From Setoptus koraiensis (Eukaryota > Animalia > Arthropoda), in contig CM106585.1 of NCBI GenBank assembly GCA_048013815.1, positions 7,564,001 to 7,628,000 on the forward strand: a stretch of 64,000 bases of DNA. The letters run 5' to 3'. The notes below the pieces were generated by a model that saw nothing but the letters and a program-made list of their open reading frames with translations, was not told the origin of the DNA and searched no databases. The translations under genes were made by a program, and so were the position numbers. This document shows positions 10,336-20,027 of this stretch, piece after piece; positions within the stretch are counted from its first letter, which is position 1; each line of letters opens with the position of its first letter.

Positions 10336-11911
10336 AGTAACCCTCAATGAACAATAAATTGTATGTTGATGAGTTTCTTCTAGGTAAACTACAAATAAAG
10401 CTGTACGCTTTTATTGAATCCTCGACAAAATTGACATAATATCGCCTCTAATCAAACTGTATTTGGTCTAAGAACTTCTTATCTCAAATGTATATATATA
10501 TGTGAAAGAGCGACATGACACCTGTTTGGGTTCCCATATTCGTACCAAGATTATACAGCCGCGCTAGATGTGGGAACATCTATTCGACAGCTCAAATGTG
10601 TATGCGAGACCACCATCGCTCATGAGACACTCAAGTTGGTTTAGTTCCTGATAATCAATACATCTAATTGATTATTGTCTCGATCTCTTTCTACTGTGAT
10701 GAGAATGGACCTCGTCTGTAGAGTATATTGCGTCTAGTTTGCCAATCATGTTTTTCGAGTTTCGAACAAGGTATCGTGCTCTCCATGTACGATTGTCATT
10801 GAGGTCACACTGTTTCCTATCGATGAATCCCATGAACGGCACCTCTTATCGAATCATCTTCATATAGGGGTTTGTACTAGTTTACTTTTACTATTTTATG
10901 ATGACGGATGACTCAAATGAAGTTGTCGAGTCATTTGATGTGGCAAAAAACACTTTTCGACTTTGACCTTACCAAGGTATTACAAAGATCACTGATCGAG
11001 AGGATGATCGTTGCAAGTCATAGCTTGTGTATTTTGTTTGAATAAATGATAGATAAACAGCAGAAATGTCGTAATAGAGTGTAATAAATGCTGATTATAC
11101 GTATTCTGTATGTGCACAATACAGCCGTGTGGTATGTTTTGCGCTAATCTACTCGCATAAAGATGAAATAGACATCAGATTATTCGCGGCTGCCTAGAAC
11201 AATTTGATTCGTTTTGTCGGAAATTTTAACGTTTTCCCATTCTCTGAGGAGCGAGTGTCCACGAGAGGATGGTATCAAATTATACAAAACTATTGGAAGA
11301 TGATAAACTGCATCACTTGATTGATGCGTATCTGCAATTTTCAATCAATTTCTCATTGTTTTCCAGATAGACTCTTATAATGGAAGTTGGAGATTTTTAG
11401 AATATCTCCCTTTGATCTCACATGGGCGTCATATTAGAATCTAAAACCTTTCATACTCAAACAGATACATATGTAGAGCAACAACAATGCTGATAGTGAG
11501 GCGCGCAAGAACTATAGCAACAGAAGCTTCCACTAAGCTGTTGATTACGCCGATAATAAAAGATCTTTCAACTTTTATAACTGGCTTGACGTTCTCTAAT
11601 CCTTGAGTGGTGTTAAATAACAATCGTCGGGTCGGCCTATAAATTATGCGCAAATTGTATTCTATGAAATTTTAAATACAATTTTAATTCCAAAACTAGC
11701 CATTTATATCGTTTGCATGTAACATCAGATTGAAATTTTTAATTATCAGTTGTCAATCTCACCCCGGCTGTTTATTTGTACTTGTTTATTTACAAAACCG
11801 AAAATGCCTCTCTTGATCGGAGATTTTCCATTATTAACCACAAGTAATCTACGAGAAAGAACAATTGACCTAAGTATGCCTCATAAGAAGAGATCTACCG
11901 AACCAAGTTGC

Positions 11912-13798
11912 ATGATGATTCAACTAAGCTATAAAACATGTAATCGTTACAACCATCTGTCAAGTGTCTCACTATTGTATTTGTCACTACTTTCAACGAT
12001 ACCCATGGCTAGTTTTGAAGACATCTCTGCGGTAACCAGGTCAAGTCAACCGATCGACACTACAGGTGCGATCAATCTACCGGTCAATCCAAGTCCCAGC
12101 ATCAATACCGACGATGATCCAAATGAGATTCAAAATGCAAGAAAGGAGCTGATTGATTATAGTACTGCTGTAATAGATTCATTAGATTTCAAAGACAAAA
12201 TCAACAGGCCTGTGGAATTCAAACATCACAATGCAAGAGAATTGCACGAGCAATTGACGCATTTGAACAGGTTATATCCTAATCTCACCAGATTATATAG
12301 TGTTGGTAAGAGTGTAAGTGGAGAACATTTATGGGTTTTAGAAGTAAGTGACAAAGCTGGACAACATGAAATCATGAAACCCGAATTCAAATACGTGGCA
12401 AATATGCATGGTAACGAGGTTGTCGGACGCGAACTTCTGCTATTGCTTGCGCGTCTATTGTTGGACAATTATCAGGAGGAGCCAAGTGATCCCATGGACG
12501 ATCCACCCAGTCAACAGTTTGTAAGAAAGTTGCTCAAGTCGACGAGAATACATCTAATGCCGAGTATGAATCCCGATGGATATAAAAACTCCGGTTTGGG
12601 CTGCGTCTTTGAGCCCGTAAGTCGTAGAGGCCGTCTGAATGAAAACAACATTGACTTGAACAGAAACTTTCCAGATCGCATTATAGAGAATACTGTTGAC
12701 TTAAACACTCAACCGGAAACTCGAGCTATCATTGAATGGTCAAAATCGATTCCATTTGCATTGGGTGCAAATCTTCACGGGGGCAAGTCTATATGATAAT
12801 CTAATGATGATGATAAGTAATGAATTGTAAGAACTTGAATCAATTTTCACTGCTAATGAACAAAATTTACATATTATAGGTGCTTTGGTTGTTTCGTACC
12901 CATTTGATGCAACAAAAAACTCATCCACGACAGGAGAGGCTGCTCTAACTCCTGACGATGAACTTTTCAAGCATCTAAGCAAGGTATATTCAAATGTAAG
13001 TAATCGTCGCTAATACTATCATCCTGTTATCAAAATCATTAGATTGTGTTCACTCCTGATTTATTCTTTTTGGTTTGCTTGTCTAATCTTTAGAATCATG
13101 AGAACATGTACAAGAATGAAATGTGCTACGATTTTTGTGGTCACTATCATCAAGAGATATTCACTGATGGCATAATCAACGGTGCTTCTTGGTACCCTTT
13201 ATATGGCACTATGGCTGATTGGTTGTATACCAACACTAATCAATTAGATCTCACTATAGAGGTGGGTTGCAATCAATTTCCTCCCTCCATTGAACTGGAG
13301 AGATATTGGAACTACAATAAGAGGGCATTAATAAGCTACATCAAAGAAATACACAGAGGCATCAAAGGTATTATTTTAGACGACAGGACCGGAAAAGCAT
13401 TAGCTGGTGTTCGTGTCAAGGTTTACGGTATCGAGAAAGATGTATTCAGCTCAGCCTATGGCGATTTTTGGCGTATACTTGTACCGGGTTCTTATTATGT
13501 TCAATTTTCCAAAAGAGGCTACGAACCATCACGTAAAGCACATGTATTCGTCTCTTCTTTCATGGCAACTATAATAAGAGTTAACCTAGTTCCCTTAAAA
13601 TCATTGGGACAAAGATCTAGTACACCAAGAGGCGACACTATTTTGGATGAGATTAAAACCGAAAATAAATCCTCTGGTTCGAATGCCTCAACAATACTGT
13701 GGATTCTCGTTGTTGCTCTCGTAATTGCTGTGTCAGGTGGAGTATTCATCCTGAAAAGGCGAAAGAATAACAAGAATCAATCATTGGAAATGAGTTAA
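11912..13798 (+). CDS. M14B metallocarboxypeptidase (CPD/CPM-like) with one catalytic domain and a C-terminal TM helix; 3 exons; start codon uncertain
   Basis: Zinc ligands HGNE and NLHGG, NRNFP, ASWYP, catalytic Glu in TIEVGC, a transthyretin-like domain (RGIKGII...GDFWRILVPG) and a TM segment (TILWILVVALVIAVSGGVFIL). Exons are ..12782, 12880-12995 and 13094-13798. The first intron is GC-AG. Confidence 0.9.
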
Positions 13799-14348
13799 AG
13801 TAGTAGCCAACTGGAATATTATTGATGGTAACTACAATGAGCATACTGTATCGGGCTCGACCTGTCGTTGCAGGTAGTCTATAGAATAAACATCGATAAA
13901 ACTAAATATCACTATAATAGTTATAGGACAGAGCACATGAATAAATTCTTTTCATCAGCTTGGTTTATTATTTCATTTTTATTATGCCTCTAACTAATAT
14001 CTTGAAGATTGACTGGGGCTTGGGAATGACTGGAGTTACACACATTAAAACTCTCACTAGCGACCTAGGTTAGATAAGGAGTATTTTGGTTAATCTGAAT
14101 TATTTCGGATGATAATCTACCGTATTTCTTGTGTATAAATAAGAACAAGGCTGATAATAGGAAGCATATACCGCCAACAATAATCGATCGATTCGATTAT
14201 TGTGAGCGGATAAATGTAATTTAATCCTTTGAAATGCATCAGAGATCTTACAAGTTCGCTTGTGCGAAGGCAGAATATTGTGGGATGGTGTGATACTTCG
14301 AATGATGTCATCACGTTCTCATTGTTTTCAATTCGATTTGAAAGCGCT
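13725..14348. repeat. Copy 1 of a local segmental duplication (blocks 13725-14184 and 14214-14348)
   Basis: 13725-14184 matches 18057-18516 with 5 mismatches in 460 bp (hand comparison). 14214-14348 matches 19540-19673 with about 5 differences, including a 1-bp indel. Confidence 0.95.
14065..14184 (-). pseudogene. CDC50A 3'-terminal relic (last ~40 codons only)
   Basis: Nearly identical to 18397-18516, the C-terminal end of the intact CDC50A. The rest of the CDS is absent and the sequence jumps to a copy of the CDC50A upstream region. Confidence 0.88.
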
Positions 14349-14964: not shown

Positions 14965-17900
14965 ATGGCTAGAAGAAGCGAACCAGCGTCAATTTGTGTC
15001 CAGATTGCGGTGGGCCTGATAAAGGTTTTGATGCTCATTTTCGATATCATCACTTTGCCTTGTTATTTCTTTTGGCAGCGACCAGATCTTCGAAGGCAAG
15101 CCGCTTACCAGTTGAAATCGGAACGAGTGGACGATAATACCTGGATAAAGACGACAAGAACAACAACCAATTGTTTGATAAACAGCAAAATCCATCGCAA
15201 CAGAAGCCAGTATGACAACAATAAAGCCTTTTATTCGTTTGACAAAAGGGTCACGGCCAAAAGTAGACAAAAATACAATTTCAAAGGATCCACATTAAAT
15301 GAAATATTTGCCAATTCCGTCATCGAACACAGTGCCAGGCCCTGTTTGGGCTACAGGGCCCTCATAACATGCCCCGTTGTTGTTCACGACAAACAAGGCA
15401 GGCAAACACTGCAAGAGAAAAGTTTTCGCAGCGACTTCACCTGGTACACCTATGAACAAGTGGGCAGACGCGTCCAAGATATCGCCTCCGGATTGTATGC
15501 TCACTCTATTTATCCCAATTCTAGAGCTCTCATATTCGGCGACAGTTCACTGGAATGGTTTATAGCGGCCCACGCTTGCTTTCAACTGGGCATACAATTG
15601 GTACTGGCGCCCGATATTAACGATGCCAAAATATTGGCCTCTATAGTGAGAGAGGCCAAAGTGGAGTCAATATTCGCTTCGTGCACTAAATTGGACTTAA
15701 TCAACAGATTGTTCGAGTGCGTCCGGCACGAAATGAGTGAAACTGGGCCAGAGACAGGAAAGACGTCGATTGCGGTGAAACAGATTGTCTTAATTGATTG
15801 GCAGTTTTCAATTGATTTCAACGAGCCCGATTTCGGTGCACTCAAACAAGCGACAAAAAATCTCGTCGGAAATATTCTGGCCATGGGCAAAATCGAGGAG
15901 AGAGGCTCAGAGAACCCCATTGAGTTGGGGTGCCGCTTGAAATTCATGGCCGATTGTGGCGACGATGCCCAGAAACTGCCATCGTCGTTGCTGCAAGACG
16001 AACCGTTTCTGACTCACAGACTCACCGGCGGTTATAGTCGGTCCACTCTGGATGTGGCCGCTCGAAGTGCCGACAACGAGCCCCAAGACAGCAAGACGAC
16101 CAGAAACAACTACAAAAATGATGTTCAACACAGCACCAGTGCGAGGCATCGAACCAGGAGCCAAGGCAGTGATCGCAACACAAACCCGCCCTCGGAAAGT
16201 TTCAATTTCAGCCACAATTTTGGCCGTACGAATGGTATCGCTCCGCTGGTGGCAAACGGAAAAACAACAAACAACAGAAGGGCGGCTGAATTCAAGAGGC
16301 CCGAACCCGATGATCTGGCCATGATTGTCTACAGCTATGGTTCGATGCGAAAACTAAAAGGTGTCACGCTCACTCATGCCTGTCTGGCGCGTTGCAATCA
16401 CTATTCGTTCTTGGATGGCATCATTCAGGACGATGATTTTCATTGTGCCGTTTTGCCATTGGACAATCTGTTTGAATTTATCACAGAAATGTGCCTGTTT
16501 AGTCGGGGTGCCTCAATTGGTTATTCTTGCGGCGCCGAGACACTGTTCTACGACGGAAGCGAGCTCACTAATAAGCGAGATCGTTGCGATTTGGAGGCTC
16601 TGAAGCCCACCTTTCTGGCCACTCGTCCGGTCATGCTAGAGCGATTTAGAGCGGCCATAAATGCGTTCATTGGCGACAAAATGAATCCCATTCTTAGCTA
16701 TTTAATGATAAATGTCATATATGACTACAAGAGATATTGGGCAAAAAACTACTACAACACGCCGCTGATTGACAGTTTGTTTTGTTCGAGATTGCGAGCG
16801 CTGTTGTTTGGCTGTAGGGCAAAATTCATTTTGTGTCATGGCGCAACAAAATGTTCCGAAACAAAAGATTTCTTTGCCTTCATGGTGAACATACCTATCA
16901 TTGAATTGTACGGCCAGACAGAGGCAATAGTGAGCATGATGTCAGCCATAGACATATGGGACTTTCACGAGAGTAATCACGGCAAAAAATACGAATCCAT
17001 AAGAGAGCGTCTACTATTGCATCAGGCACAGGGACCTCAGCCGGACTTTCAGCAGATACAATTGATGCCTTCGACAACAAACAGCAATCTCACCATAAAG
17101 GAAAGCTCAAAGAATCTGCTGATAACGTCGTCGGTGTTTTGTCCCACGCAACACATGCGCATCAGATTAGAGGATTGGGGCGATTTCCGCACCACCGATT
17201 TGCCCTATCCGAGGGGCCGGCTAATTGTGGGCGGCGACATTGTTGGCAGGGGCTATTTCAACGATCGTCATCAGCAACTGACAGACAAATTGTTTTACGT
17301 GGACTCAAACTTTATTAGATGGTTCAAAACGGAGGACATAGCCCAGGCGCTACCAAACGGCACCTTCGAAATAATATCGTGCATGTCTGATTTGATCAAG
17401 ATGGCCGACGGTCATTTTATATCGCTCGGTCAGGTGGAGCAAATATTGCGCAACAGTCAATTTGTGGATAATGTTTGCGCTATTTGTTGCGAAGAGCGAA
17501 AGTTCCTCATAGCGTTGGTGGTGCCCAATTTGCAACGCTTGGCACTAAAGTCGCCCGGCGCCGATGACATCAAAATGGCCATAGGTATTGGCGGGCCGGA
17601 ACCGGACGAATTGAACGACATTGATTTGCGGCGCGAGGTTTGCAACGACCGGCTGCTGTGCGAGTTCGTCAACAATCATCTCAGCGAGTTGGTGCTGAAA
17701 GCGGGCCTACAGGCCATTCCGAAACGCTTTCACTTGGTGGCGGAGATATGGACGCCAGAATCGGAACTGGTGACGCCGTCGTTGAAGCCCTCTAGGAGGA
17801 ACATTGAGAAATTTTATGCCTGCGAAATAGAGACAATATTCAAGACGGAATTTGTGAGGTCGCCGAGCGAGCGCCGACTGAAGCTGCTGAGGATGAAAAA

Positions 17901-18015
17901 GATCAGACAGCAGGGCTGTAACGGGGCCGGCGGAAACGCGTCGCGTCTGGACAAGAGCGCCCACCACAGCAGGATGCTGTCGCCCGCCGACAACTCGCTG
18001 AGGCTGTCGATCTGA
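14965..18015 (+). CDS. Long-chain acyl-CoA synthetase (ACSL3/4)-like protein, intronless, with degenerate ATP-binding motifs
   Basis: 1016-aa ORF with an ACSL3/4-type N-terminus (IFDIITLPCYFFWQRP), FTWYTYEQV, LKPTFLATRP, YGQTE, RLEDW...DLPYPRG, ISLGQVEQIL...FVDNVC and EIWTPESELVTPSLK. The P-loop reads YSYGSMRKLKG. Confidence 0.88.
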   Translation: MARRSEPASICVQIAVGLIKVLMLIFDIITLPCYFFWQRPDLRRQAAYQLKSERVDDNTWIKTTRTTTNCLINSKIHRNRSQYDNNKAFYSFDKRVTAKSRQKYNFKGSTLNEIFANSVIEHSARPCLGYRALITCPVVVHDKQGRQTLQEKSFRSDFTWYTYEQVGRRVQDIASGLYAHSIYPNSRALIFGDSSLEWFIAAHACFQLGIQLVLAPDINDAKILASIVREAKVESIFASCTKLDLINRLFECVRHEMSETGPETGKTSIAVKQIVLIDWQFSIDFNEPDFGALKQATKNLVGNILAMGKIEERGSENPIELGCRLKFMADCGDDAQKLPSSLLQDEPFLTHRLTGGYSRSTLDVAARSADNEPQDSKTTRNNYKNDVQHSTSARHRTRSQGSDRNTNPPSESFNFSHNFGRTNGIAPLVANGKTTNNRRAAEFKRPEPDDLAMIVYSYGSMRKLKGVTLTHACLARCNHYSFLDGIIQDDDFHCAVLPLDNLFEFITEMCLFSRGASIGYSCGAETLFYDGSELTNKRDRCDLEALKPTFLATRPVMLERFRAAINAFIGDKMNPILSYLMINVIYDYKRYWAKNYYNTPLIDSLFCSRLRALLFGCRAKFILCHGATKCSETKDFFAFMVNIPIIELYGQTEAIVSMMSAIDIWDFHESNHGKKYESIRERLLLHQAQGPQPDFQQIQLMPSTTNSNLTIKESSKNLLITSSVFCPTQHMRIRLEDWGDFRTTDLPYPRGRLIVGGDIVGRGYFNDRHQQLTDKLFYVDSNFIRWFKTEDIAQALPNGTFEIISCMSDLIKMADGHFISLGQVEQILRNSQFVDNVCAICCEERKFLIALVVPNLQRLALKSPGADDIKMAIGIGGPEPDELNDIDLRREVCNDRLLCEFVNNHLSELVLKAGLQAIPKRFHLVAEIWTPESELVTPSLKPSRRNIEKFYACEIETIFKTEFVRSPSERRLKLLRMKKIRQQGCNGAGGNASRLDKSAHHSRMLSPADNSLRLSI

Positions 18016-18056: not shown

Positions 18057-18516
18057 TTGCTGTGTCAGGTGGAGTATTCATCCTGGAAAGGCAAAAGAAT
18101 AACAAGAATCAATCATTGGAAATGAGTTAAAGTAGTAGCCAACTGGAATATTATTGATGGTAACTACAATGAGCATACTGTATCGGGCTCGACCTGTCGT
18201 TGCAGGTAGTCTATAGAATAAACATCGATAAAACTAAATATCACTATAATAGTTATCGGACGGAGCACATGAATAAATTCTTTTCATCAGCTTGGTTTAT
18301 TATTTCATTTTTATTATGCCTCTAACTAATATCTTGAAGATTGACTGGGGCTTGGGAATGACTGGAGTTACACACATTAAAACTCTCACTAGCGACCTAG
18401 GTTAGATAAGGAGTATTTTGGTTAATCTGTATTATTTCGGATGATAATCTACCGTATTTCTTGTGTATAAATAAGAACAAGGCTGATAATAGGAAGCATA
18501 TACCGCCAACAATAAT
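18057..18516. repeat. Copy 2 of the duplicated block (carboxypeptidase C-terminal tail, shared 3' UTR interval, CDC50A 3' end)
   Basis: Constant offset of 4332 bp from 13725-14184. It begins 41 bp after the ACSL-like stop codon. Confidence 0.95.
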
Positions 18517-19473: not shown

Positions 19474-20027
19474 GATGACGATAATAATAATCAATTGGGG
19501 ACCAATATTATAGCAATTCCCACAATTATTTGTGGATGTATGTAATTCAATCCTTTGAAATGCATCAGAGATCTTACAGTTCGCTTGTGCGAAGGCAGAA
19601 TATTGTGGGATGGTGTGATACTTCGAACGATGTCATCACGTTCTCATTGTTTTCAATTTGATTCGAAAGCGCTAAATTCAAACTACAGTTTTTTTCGGAG
19701 AAAGTTCCAGGGGTCGCTACAATCGACTATTGCATGCGCTCAACTTGAGTGACCCAACCTGCGGCAACGTGTTGCAGGCTGCAACTTGCAGCGTGGTACG
19801 TGTAAAATATAGGCATTTATGTTAAGGTCAGCAATCTGGGCTAGTGTCTAGTCATAGCTCATCACATTCCAAAGTCCGGATAGATTAGAGTTTTGTTTGC
19901 CATTTATACAACATCAACTCCGTTTATATTCACTGCCAATCTAGATCCGAACATATAATCTGCTTATACTATATTTTGATCCGCATATTTTTGTTGAAAA
20001 TCTTACAACAGTTGAAAATTAGCGAAG

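Follow-up and report, generated by a model that had tools for sequence, protein, structure and literature searches.

An ACSL3/4-like gene in the Setoptus koraiensis genome

The DNA under study, henceforth the window, is a stretch of 64,000 nucleotides from the genome of the eriophyoid mite Setoptus koraiensis (GenBank assembly GCA_048013815.1, contig CM106585.1, positions 7,564,001 to 7,628,000 of the forward strand). Our subject is a single intronless open reading frame (ORF) within it, the product of which resembles long-chain acyl-CoA synthetases (ACSLs) of the ACSL3/4 type and is a candidate pseudoenzyme (Table 1). The protein matches the Pfam AMP-binding family PF00501 with 102.8 bits, against a cut-off of 29.9 (E value 2.3e-29), and its top cluster in the ESM Atlas is named 'Acsl3-like'. 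A scan against NCBIfam gave only partial hits, all below threshold, and a sequence search of solved structures gave only weak partial matches to adenylation domains of non-ribosomal peptide synthetases and carboxylic acid reductases (CARs), with no ACSL3/4 structure among them. The assembly amounts to 48,755,295 bases in two contigs (24,221,962 and 24,533,333 bases), with largely intronless genes; it has been published as the chromosome-level genome of this member of the Phytoptidae, with two chromosomes, an N50 of 24.53 Mb and 5,954 protein-coding genes (PMC11920263). Logan contigs from public runs of three studies, two of which look like one data set filed twice and one of which may be the source of the assembly, agree with the ORF up to nucleotide 18002 with 0 differences, the end of the ORF lying on a separate short contig. 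Given this agreement, the sequence is not the result of an assembly slip.

A six-frame search of the same genome with the window protein yielded three further ACSL3/4-like loci, each a single open frame (755, 751 and 1028 residues; Table 1). In these canonical paralogues all motifs of the enzyme family are intact: YTSGSTG[LV][AP]KG, LPL[AG]H, [YF]G.TET, G..G.P, PRGE, TGD, IIDRKKD, GEY and the A10 lysine. As the window protein aligns with all three over its full length, from the N-terminal anchor to the C-terminal tail (25-31% identity), and as the 'Acsl3-like' cluster is the one nearest to it, we assign it as the fourth, divergent ACSL3/4-type paralogue of its genome. The nearest named canonical relative that we found is from the oribatid mite Medioppia subpectinata. 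The longest of the three paralogues (G000:C1:16041462-16044548, L013:1462-4548; 1028 residues) is unusual in its own way, having a low-complexity insert of about 230 residues ahead of the P-loop and another one within its C-terminal domain while keeping all catalytic motifs; its orthologue is P0040.

A single family under purifying selection

How widely is this divergent form distributed? A word-based protein search returned 18 relatives of 896-1072 residues with 41-82% identity to the window protein (44-84% in the multiple alignment), nearly all from Logan or metagenome assemblies and none from NCBI; beyond these it found bacterial ACSLs only, with E values of 3e-13 or weaker. As any claim of novelty rests on the lack of other relatives, an exhaustive HMMER search was run with the family profile, in which three full-length family representatives scored at least 1238 bits and a fragment 551, while the next hit scored 373; from there down, the hits inspected, to about rank 60, were ordinary ACSLs throughout. 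The family thus numbers about 20 sequences, 19 of them full-length, the window protein included.

Maximum-likelihood analysis of 74 rows unites the 19 sequences in a single clade, with a support of 100 in the Shimodaira-Hasegawa-like approximate likelihood ratio test (SH-aLRT). The clade sits on a stem of 2.03 substitutions per site, its internal branches measuring 0.04-0.65, and is divided into the window protein and P0001 on one side and the other 17 members on the other (support 98). Since the backbone forks among the canonical ACSLs have supports below 80 and the family attaches by a long branch, we claim no particular paralogue as its source.

One further sequence, P0049 (L018:492-2912; Logan SRR11635883), was considered as a distant member and rejected, as it carries just 6 of the 52 family-specific invariants described below (canonical controls reach up to 7) and has no MIF gene as neighbour. 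It is an 806-residue, intronless, degenerate ACSL3/4-like protein from another compact genome. Like the family it departs from the canonical P-loop, which lies in an expanded region in P0049, and from the A4 His, A7 Asp, A8 Arg and A10 Lys; unlike the family it still has the Thr of A5, the Gly of the Gly loop and the Glu of A6, and the insert is missing. It appears to be an independent degenerate case, and its joining the family in the tree may be due to long-branch attraction.

The frame is open in all 19 full-length sequences. Between the window gene and its closest orthologue, P0001 (DNA locus L014), the Nei-Gojobori method gives 0.102 nonsynonymous (dN) and 1.10 synonymous (dS) substitutions per site and thus a ratio, omega, of 0.093; an independent pair from the other sub-clade (P0005/P0008) gives an omega of 0.091 at a dS of 0.91, both ratios being approximate with dS near 1. 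By region, omega in the first pair is 0.039 for residues 446-670, 0.017 for residues 726-960 and 0.17 for the alignable part of the linker, which contributes few codons. The deeper pairs P0004/P0006, P0002/P0004 and P0002/P0008 are saturated at synonymous sites and were left out. The initial annotation, made from the letters of the window alone, had taken the gene for a maintained protein rather than a decaying pseudogene on account of its intact frame of 1016 codons; the frame is indeed open throughout, and the two omega values together with the 19 open frames bear out the conclusion. The called start of P0001, a GTG (L014:2976-3000), is probably too far downstream, as the frame runs up to an ATG encoding MARRSEP, as in the window protein.

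Loss of the catalytic motifs

As a reference for the catalytic residues we used the 54 nearest canonical ACSLs, among which 65 alignment columns are at least 90% identical. The family keeps 28 of these, mostly Gly, Pro and Trp, fixes another residue at five (M455V, V554R, Y741F, E752R and D805S) and varies at 32; counted per sequence, its members retain 35-44 of the 65, versus 54-65 in canonical ACSLs. Among the changed or variable columns are S458, T461, G462, P464 and G466 of the P-loop (A3), H501 of A4, T652 of A5, G725 of the Gly loop, E752 of A6, G790 and D791 of A7 and, on the C-terminal side, D805, R806 and K808 of the A8 linker, E817 of A8 and K941 of A10.

Five strings in which the initial annotation had recognized motifs of an ACSL-like protein, in part degenerate, were all located by script where it had placed them (YSYGSMRKLKG, VLPLDN, YGQTE, KTED and TPSLK), and the ACSL3/4-like identity is confirmed by the alignment with the three canonical paralogues and the 54 relatives. 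Because this alignment places the strings at A3, A4, A5, A7 and A10, the departures in them are true substitutions, not misalignments. They extend across the family. In the P-loop, a single one of the 19 members still has Ser458 and not one has Thr461, the position of Lys465 being Lys or Arg in all. The A4 His, 100% conserved in the 54 canonical relatives, is replaced in every member by Asn, Ser, Cys or Thr, next to a family-invariant Asp500. Both glycines of the Gly loop are lost throughout, G725, which is 100% conserved in the canonical relatives, being Leu, Phe or Trp. At the A6 position an invariant Arg752 stands for a Glu that is invariant in the 54 canonical relatives. In A7 the Asp is lost in 3 and the Gly in 16 of the 19, and in the A8 linker the Arg is absent from all, with Met, Ile or Leu at the position of the first Lys. 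The A5 motif YGQTE and the A10 Lys, which had been noted as kept, are so in the window protein, but not family-wide: Thr652 occurs in the window protein alone, P0001 reading YGQSE and the other 17 mostly YGPDE, and the A10 Lys is shared with P0001 only, the other 17 having Glu. The Glu of YGxTE (Glu653), which serves Mg2+, is invariant.

The losses thus differ between the two sub-clades. In the window protein and P0001 the P-loop Gly462 has become Arg and the A10 Lys is kept, whereas most of the other 17 members still have Gly462; all 17 carry Glu at A10, and most of them Asp where A5 has its Thr. Together with the tree, these differences are most simply read as independent, continued decay of catalytic residues after the family had arisen, and we infer that such ongoing decay is what would be expected if these residues no longer matter. 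A survey of class I adenylate-forming enzymes reports full conservation of three residues, namely the A7 Asp, to which the ribose hydroxyls bind, the Arg of the A8 linker and the Lys of A10, and has the A5 Thr contact the alpha-phosphate; activity is severely hindered by mutation of the A7 Asp or the A8 Arg and severely inhibited by mutations in the P-loop (PMC6122825).

Fold, membrane anchor and family-specific features

An AlphaFold2 model of the window protein, computed from 64 aligned sequences, has a mean predicted local distance difference test score (pLDDT) of 77.7, a predicted template modelling score (pTM) of 0.78 and 505 residues with a pLDDT of at least 90. In Foldseek, both domains match CAR A domains, luciferases and the Thermus long-chain acyl-CoA synthetase 1ult, with template modelling scores by target of 0.72-0.77. 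The model thus retains the large N-terminal and small C-terminal domain of the ANL fold. Its low-confidence segments are residues 67-93, 341-437, 665-719 (in three pieces) and 986-1016.

The N-terminal hydrophobic helix is a predicted membrane anchor. Its best 19-residue Kyte-Doolittle mean is 2.33 in the window protein and 1.8-2.5 in the family, versus 1.3-1.7 in the canonical paralogues, with which the window protein has the anchor signature YD..[ST]LP.Y in common; D27, P32 and Y34 are invariant in their alignment. The disordered linker ahead of the P-loop carries basophilic sites of the RRRS/RxRS type in 13 of the 19 members. The interval between A5 and the Gly loop, which spans 15 residues in canonical ACSLs, has 67-106 in 17 of the 19 members, corresponding to an insert of 52-91 residues. 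Within the insert lie a stretch of basic residues, an acidic tract and, running into the former Gly loop, a conserved element of the type DF..QLMPP..N.F...SKNLLITSS; in the window protein the interval ends in this element, here conserved as DF..QLMP...N......SKNLLITSS. At the extreme C-terminus, a basic, Ser-rich tail leads to the ending R-[LVM]-S-x-COOH in the window protein, P0002, P0004-P0009, P0014, P0015 and P0017, which we presume to be akin to a C-terminal, phospho-dependent motif (14-3-3 mode III-like). Finally, the family has 52 invariant residues that canonical ACSLs rarely show, including Asp500, Arg752 and Ser805, which occupy positions in the pocket or the linker. The insert, the C-terminal motif and these new invariants point to new constraints on the sequence, beyond mere loss.

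Genomic neighbourhood

The gene is bracketed by recent direct repeats: two copies of 300 nucleotides (Table 1) flank it, and a second repeat pair surrounds it (14199-14348 = 19525-19673, 87-97% identical); contigs from the public runs break or fork at 17966-18002, as expected at the edge of a repeat. The downstream neighbour, on the opposite strand, belongs to the CDC50 family (Pfam). The upstream neighbour resembles, as judged by eye from the translations, a carboxypeptidase D/M-type gene; it lies in two ORFs (11750-12796 and 13106-13798), so that an intron or a frame change would fall between them. In all six orthologue loci with DNA (L014, L015, L020, L021, L022 and L023), a MIF gene of 118 codons stands tail-to-tail with the ACSL-like gene, 35-165 nucleotides past it. 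In the window genome, the MIF orthologue (86% identical) is found 7.2 Mb away, at G000:C1:350387-350740, and CDC50 adjoins the ACSL-like gene instead. As the neighbour is kept in the six orthologue loci and distant here, the ACSL-like gene was relocated in the Setoptus lineage after its split from the species of P0001.

Table 1. Features of the ACSL-like gene and its surroundings, with the canonical paralogues of the same genome (G000). Positions are nucleotides of the window unless a contig is given.
Feature	Position	Strand	Residues	Remarks
ORF of the divergent ACSL3/4-like protein	14965..18015	+		intronless, 1016 codons plus stop
N-terminal hydrophobic anchor	14986..15078	+	8-38	AlphaFold2 helix at residues 10-38, pLDDT about 90
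Disordered Ser/Thr/Arg-rich linker just ahead of P-loop	15985..16275	+	341-437	pLDDT below 50; poorly conserved
A3 P-loop	16330..16362	+	456-466	YSYGSMRKLKG for YTSGSTGxPKG; departs from [ST]SG[ST]TGxPKG; S458, T461, G462 and P464 replaced
A4/gate motif	16450..16467	+		VLPLDN for YLPLAH; Asn501 at His position
A5	16909..16923	+		YGQTE; conforms to YGxTE
A5-to-Gly-loop interval with family-only insert	16930..17133	+	656-723	68 residues vs 15 canonical; mostly disordered
GxxGxP loop position	17128..17148	+		SSVFCPT; both glycines lost; Phe725
A6	17209..17220	+		PRGR for PRGE; Arg752
A7	17326..17337	+	788-791	KTED for RTGD; Asp791 kept, Gly lost
A8/linker	17371..17391	+		IISCMSD for IIDRKKD; Asp, Arg and second Lys lost; first Lys reads Met
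A10	17773..17787	+		TPSLK; Lys941 present
Extreme C-terminus	18001..18012	+		RLSI; R-[LVM]-S-x-COOH ending, in 11/19 members
300-nt direct repeat, left copy	13725..14024	.		overlaps 3' end of upstream carboxypeptidase-like ORF (13106-13798)
300-nt direct repeat, right copy	18057..18356	.		99% identical to left copy; between ACSL-like stop and CDC50 gene
Canonical paralogue	C2:12.05 Mb			intronless
Canonical paralogue	C2:24.03 Mb			intronless
Canonical paralogue	C1:16.04 Mb			intronless

Discussion

What can be concluded about the nature of this protein? Judging from its sequence, it is by descent a member of the ACSL3/4 branch of the ANL superfamily in which most of the motifs that define an active acyl-CoA synthetase are no longer intact. 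A gene of the ACSL3/4 type underwent duplication in the ancestor of a narrow clade of mites, and one of the copies then went through a burst of change, followed by the slow evolution seen since. This copy has exchanged the residues for binding the phosphates of ATP, the ribose and the acyl-adenylate, as well as the linker on which the C-terminal domain swings, and the window protein very probably can make neither acyl-AMP nor acyl-CoA. The lost or changed chemistry that the initial annotation suspected is therefore strongly indicated by the motif losses, which fall short of proof. To our knowledge, eriophyoid mites have the most streamlined genomes of all animals, and a real function is likely, because a protein of about 1000 residues has been kept at an omega of about 0.09 in a genome stripped to about 6000 genes. 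We think it likely that the product of the ORF is a conserved pseudoenzyme of eriophyoid mites that derives from ACSL3/4, is anchored in a membrane and is maintained by selection.

How might such a protein act? It would most likely reside on the cytosolic face of the endoplasmic reticulum (ER) or lipid-droplet membrane and exert its function by binding, the ligands possibly being a lipid or acyl-CoA in a remodelled pocket, or partner proteins. Candidate contact sites are the surfaces newly conserved in the family, the insert peculiar to it and, in the linker and the C-terminal tail, the basophilic motifs that resemble phospho-sites; the protein could serve as a regulator or scaffold, perhaps for the three active ACSL paralogues. 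In mammals, the N-terminal hydrophobic hairpin of ACSL3 mediates ER association, inactive ACSL3 still reaches lipid droplets, and ACSL3 binds Lyn for Golgi export in a non-catalytic capacity (PMC6182735). A non-catalytic, membrane-bound role thus has a precedent in the lipid-droplet targeting of inactive ACSL3 and its binding to Lyn.

Several points weigh against a pseudoenzyme of this kind. The window protein itself retains the Thr-Glu of A5, the Lys of the P-loop, the Asp of A7 and the Lys of A10, and some nucleotide binding or residual activity is possible in this member. The new invariant residues at pocket positions, Asp500, Arg752 and Ser805, also fit a ligand site that has been remodelled and still works. 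The omega values are approximate, which leaves the conclusion of purifying selection standing, and, with the gene having recently moved in the Setoptus genome, they cannot measure selection since that move. No RNA run with the gene was found, the run search having given three runs of unspecified kind with contigs of it, none of them recorded as RNA, and no transcriptome is listed for the Setoptus koraiensis genome (PMC11920263). Moreover, we can only infer where the protein resides, what it binds and whether its phospho-site motifs are used.

The most serious alternative is that the protein is still an enzyme, be it an acyl-CoA synthetase with an unorthodox nucleotide site, or a ligase or transferase that carries out only part of the ANL reaction or works with another substrate or cofactor. 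It would explain why omega is lowest, at 0.02-0.04, precisely in the blocks lining the active site, why the family never varies at Glu653, Gly459, Gly650, Gly751 or Arg944, has nothing but Lys or Arg at the position of Lys465 and retains Asp791 in 16 of its 19 members, and why new invariants have appeared in the pocket while Thr652 and Lys941 persist in the window member. However, not one of the 19 members has the A8 Arg, a single one has the A5 Thr and just two have the A10 Lys, P-loop Ser458 and Thr461 are all but gone (1/19 and 0/19), and both Gly-loop glycines and the A4 His are missing from all. The lost positions, furthermore, differ by sub-clade, which is unexpected for a working catalytic site, and the A7 Asp, A8 Arg and A10 Lys are elsewhere fully conserved, with severe damage upon mutation (PMC6122825). 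On balance we consider continued catalysis improbable. A young, decaying pseudogene whose frame is still open by chance, or an assembly artefact, as could be suspected from the recently rearranged spot with 99% identical repeats on both sides, the distance from the ancestral MIF neighbour and the failure of the run search to find an RNA run holding the gene, is extremely improbable: an omega of about 0.09 in two independent pairs and full-length open frames in 19 family sequences exclude decay, the catalytic-motif changes are clade-wide and hence old, and separate public-run contigs carry the ORF with no differences.

Within the pseudoenzyme interpretation, a more specific scenario can be drawn, which as a whole we regard as speculative and rather unlikely to hold in all its parts. 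One ACSL3/4 copy would have turned into a dedicated, phospho-regulated membrane scaffold or lipid sensor, with an ACSL3-like ER/lipid-droplet anchor, a closed or re-purposed pocket, a short motif for partner binding in the insert, and the RLSx-COOH end and RRRS-type sites as a 14-3-3 (mode III-like) switch. If true, it would be the first ACSL-derived pseudoenzyme, controlling active ACSLs or lipid trafficking. In our literature search, no ACSL-derived pseudoenzyme was found described and no paper paired 'acyl-CoA synthetase' with 'pseudoenzyme' in a relevant sense; the genome paper of Aculops lycopersici does not mention acyl-CoA or fatty acids. Should the window protein be a pseudoenzyme, the ACSL branch of the ANL superfamily would join the enzyme families known to yield them.

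ACSL3 and ACSL4 have central parts in the formation of lipid droplets, the lipid composition of membranes and ferroptosis. With synthetases of this type (EC 6.2.1.3), the window protein shares homology over the full length (25-31% identity), the two-domain ANL fold, the N-terminal anchor signature and the C-terminal WTPE...LVT...R..I..Y tail. It differs from them in being without the canonical P-loop, A4 His, Gly loop, A6 Glu, A7 Gly and A8 Asp-Arg-Lys-Lys, with the A5 Thr and A10 Lys mostly lost family-wide as well, and in what the family has acquired: the post-A5 insert (17/19), the long disordered linker, the basic C-terminal tail with its RLSx end and the 52 specific invariants. Catalytically dead paralogues that are retained as regulators or scaffolds of their active relatives, such as pseudokinases, are common, and the window protein resembles such pseudoenzymes in its retained fold, lost catalytic residues, strong purifying selection and active paralogues in the same genome. 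It falls within the working definition of a pseudoenzyme as an enzyme homologue that lacks key catalytic residues and is under purifying selection. A natural, clade-wide version of ACSL3/4 without catalysis, but with anchor and fold, would isolate the non-catalytic roles of these proteins and reveal the surfaces that matter. The closest parallel in function would be mammalian ACSL3 (PMC6182735), likewise a membrane-anchored protein that acts via non-catalytic elements, as the mite protein presumably does; however, while these are side roles of an active enzyme in mammals, the mite protein appears to have given up the catalytic machinery itself.

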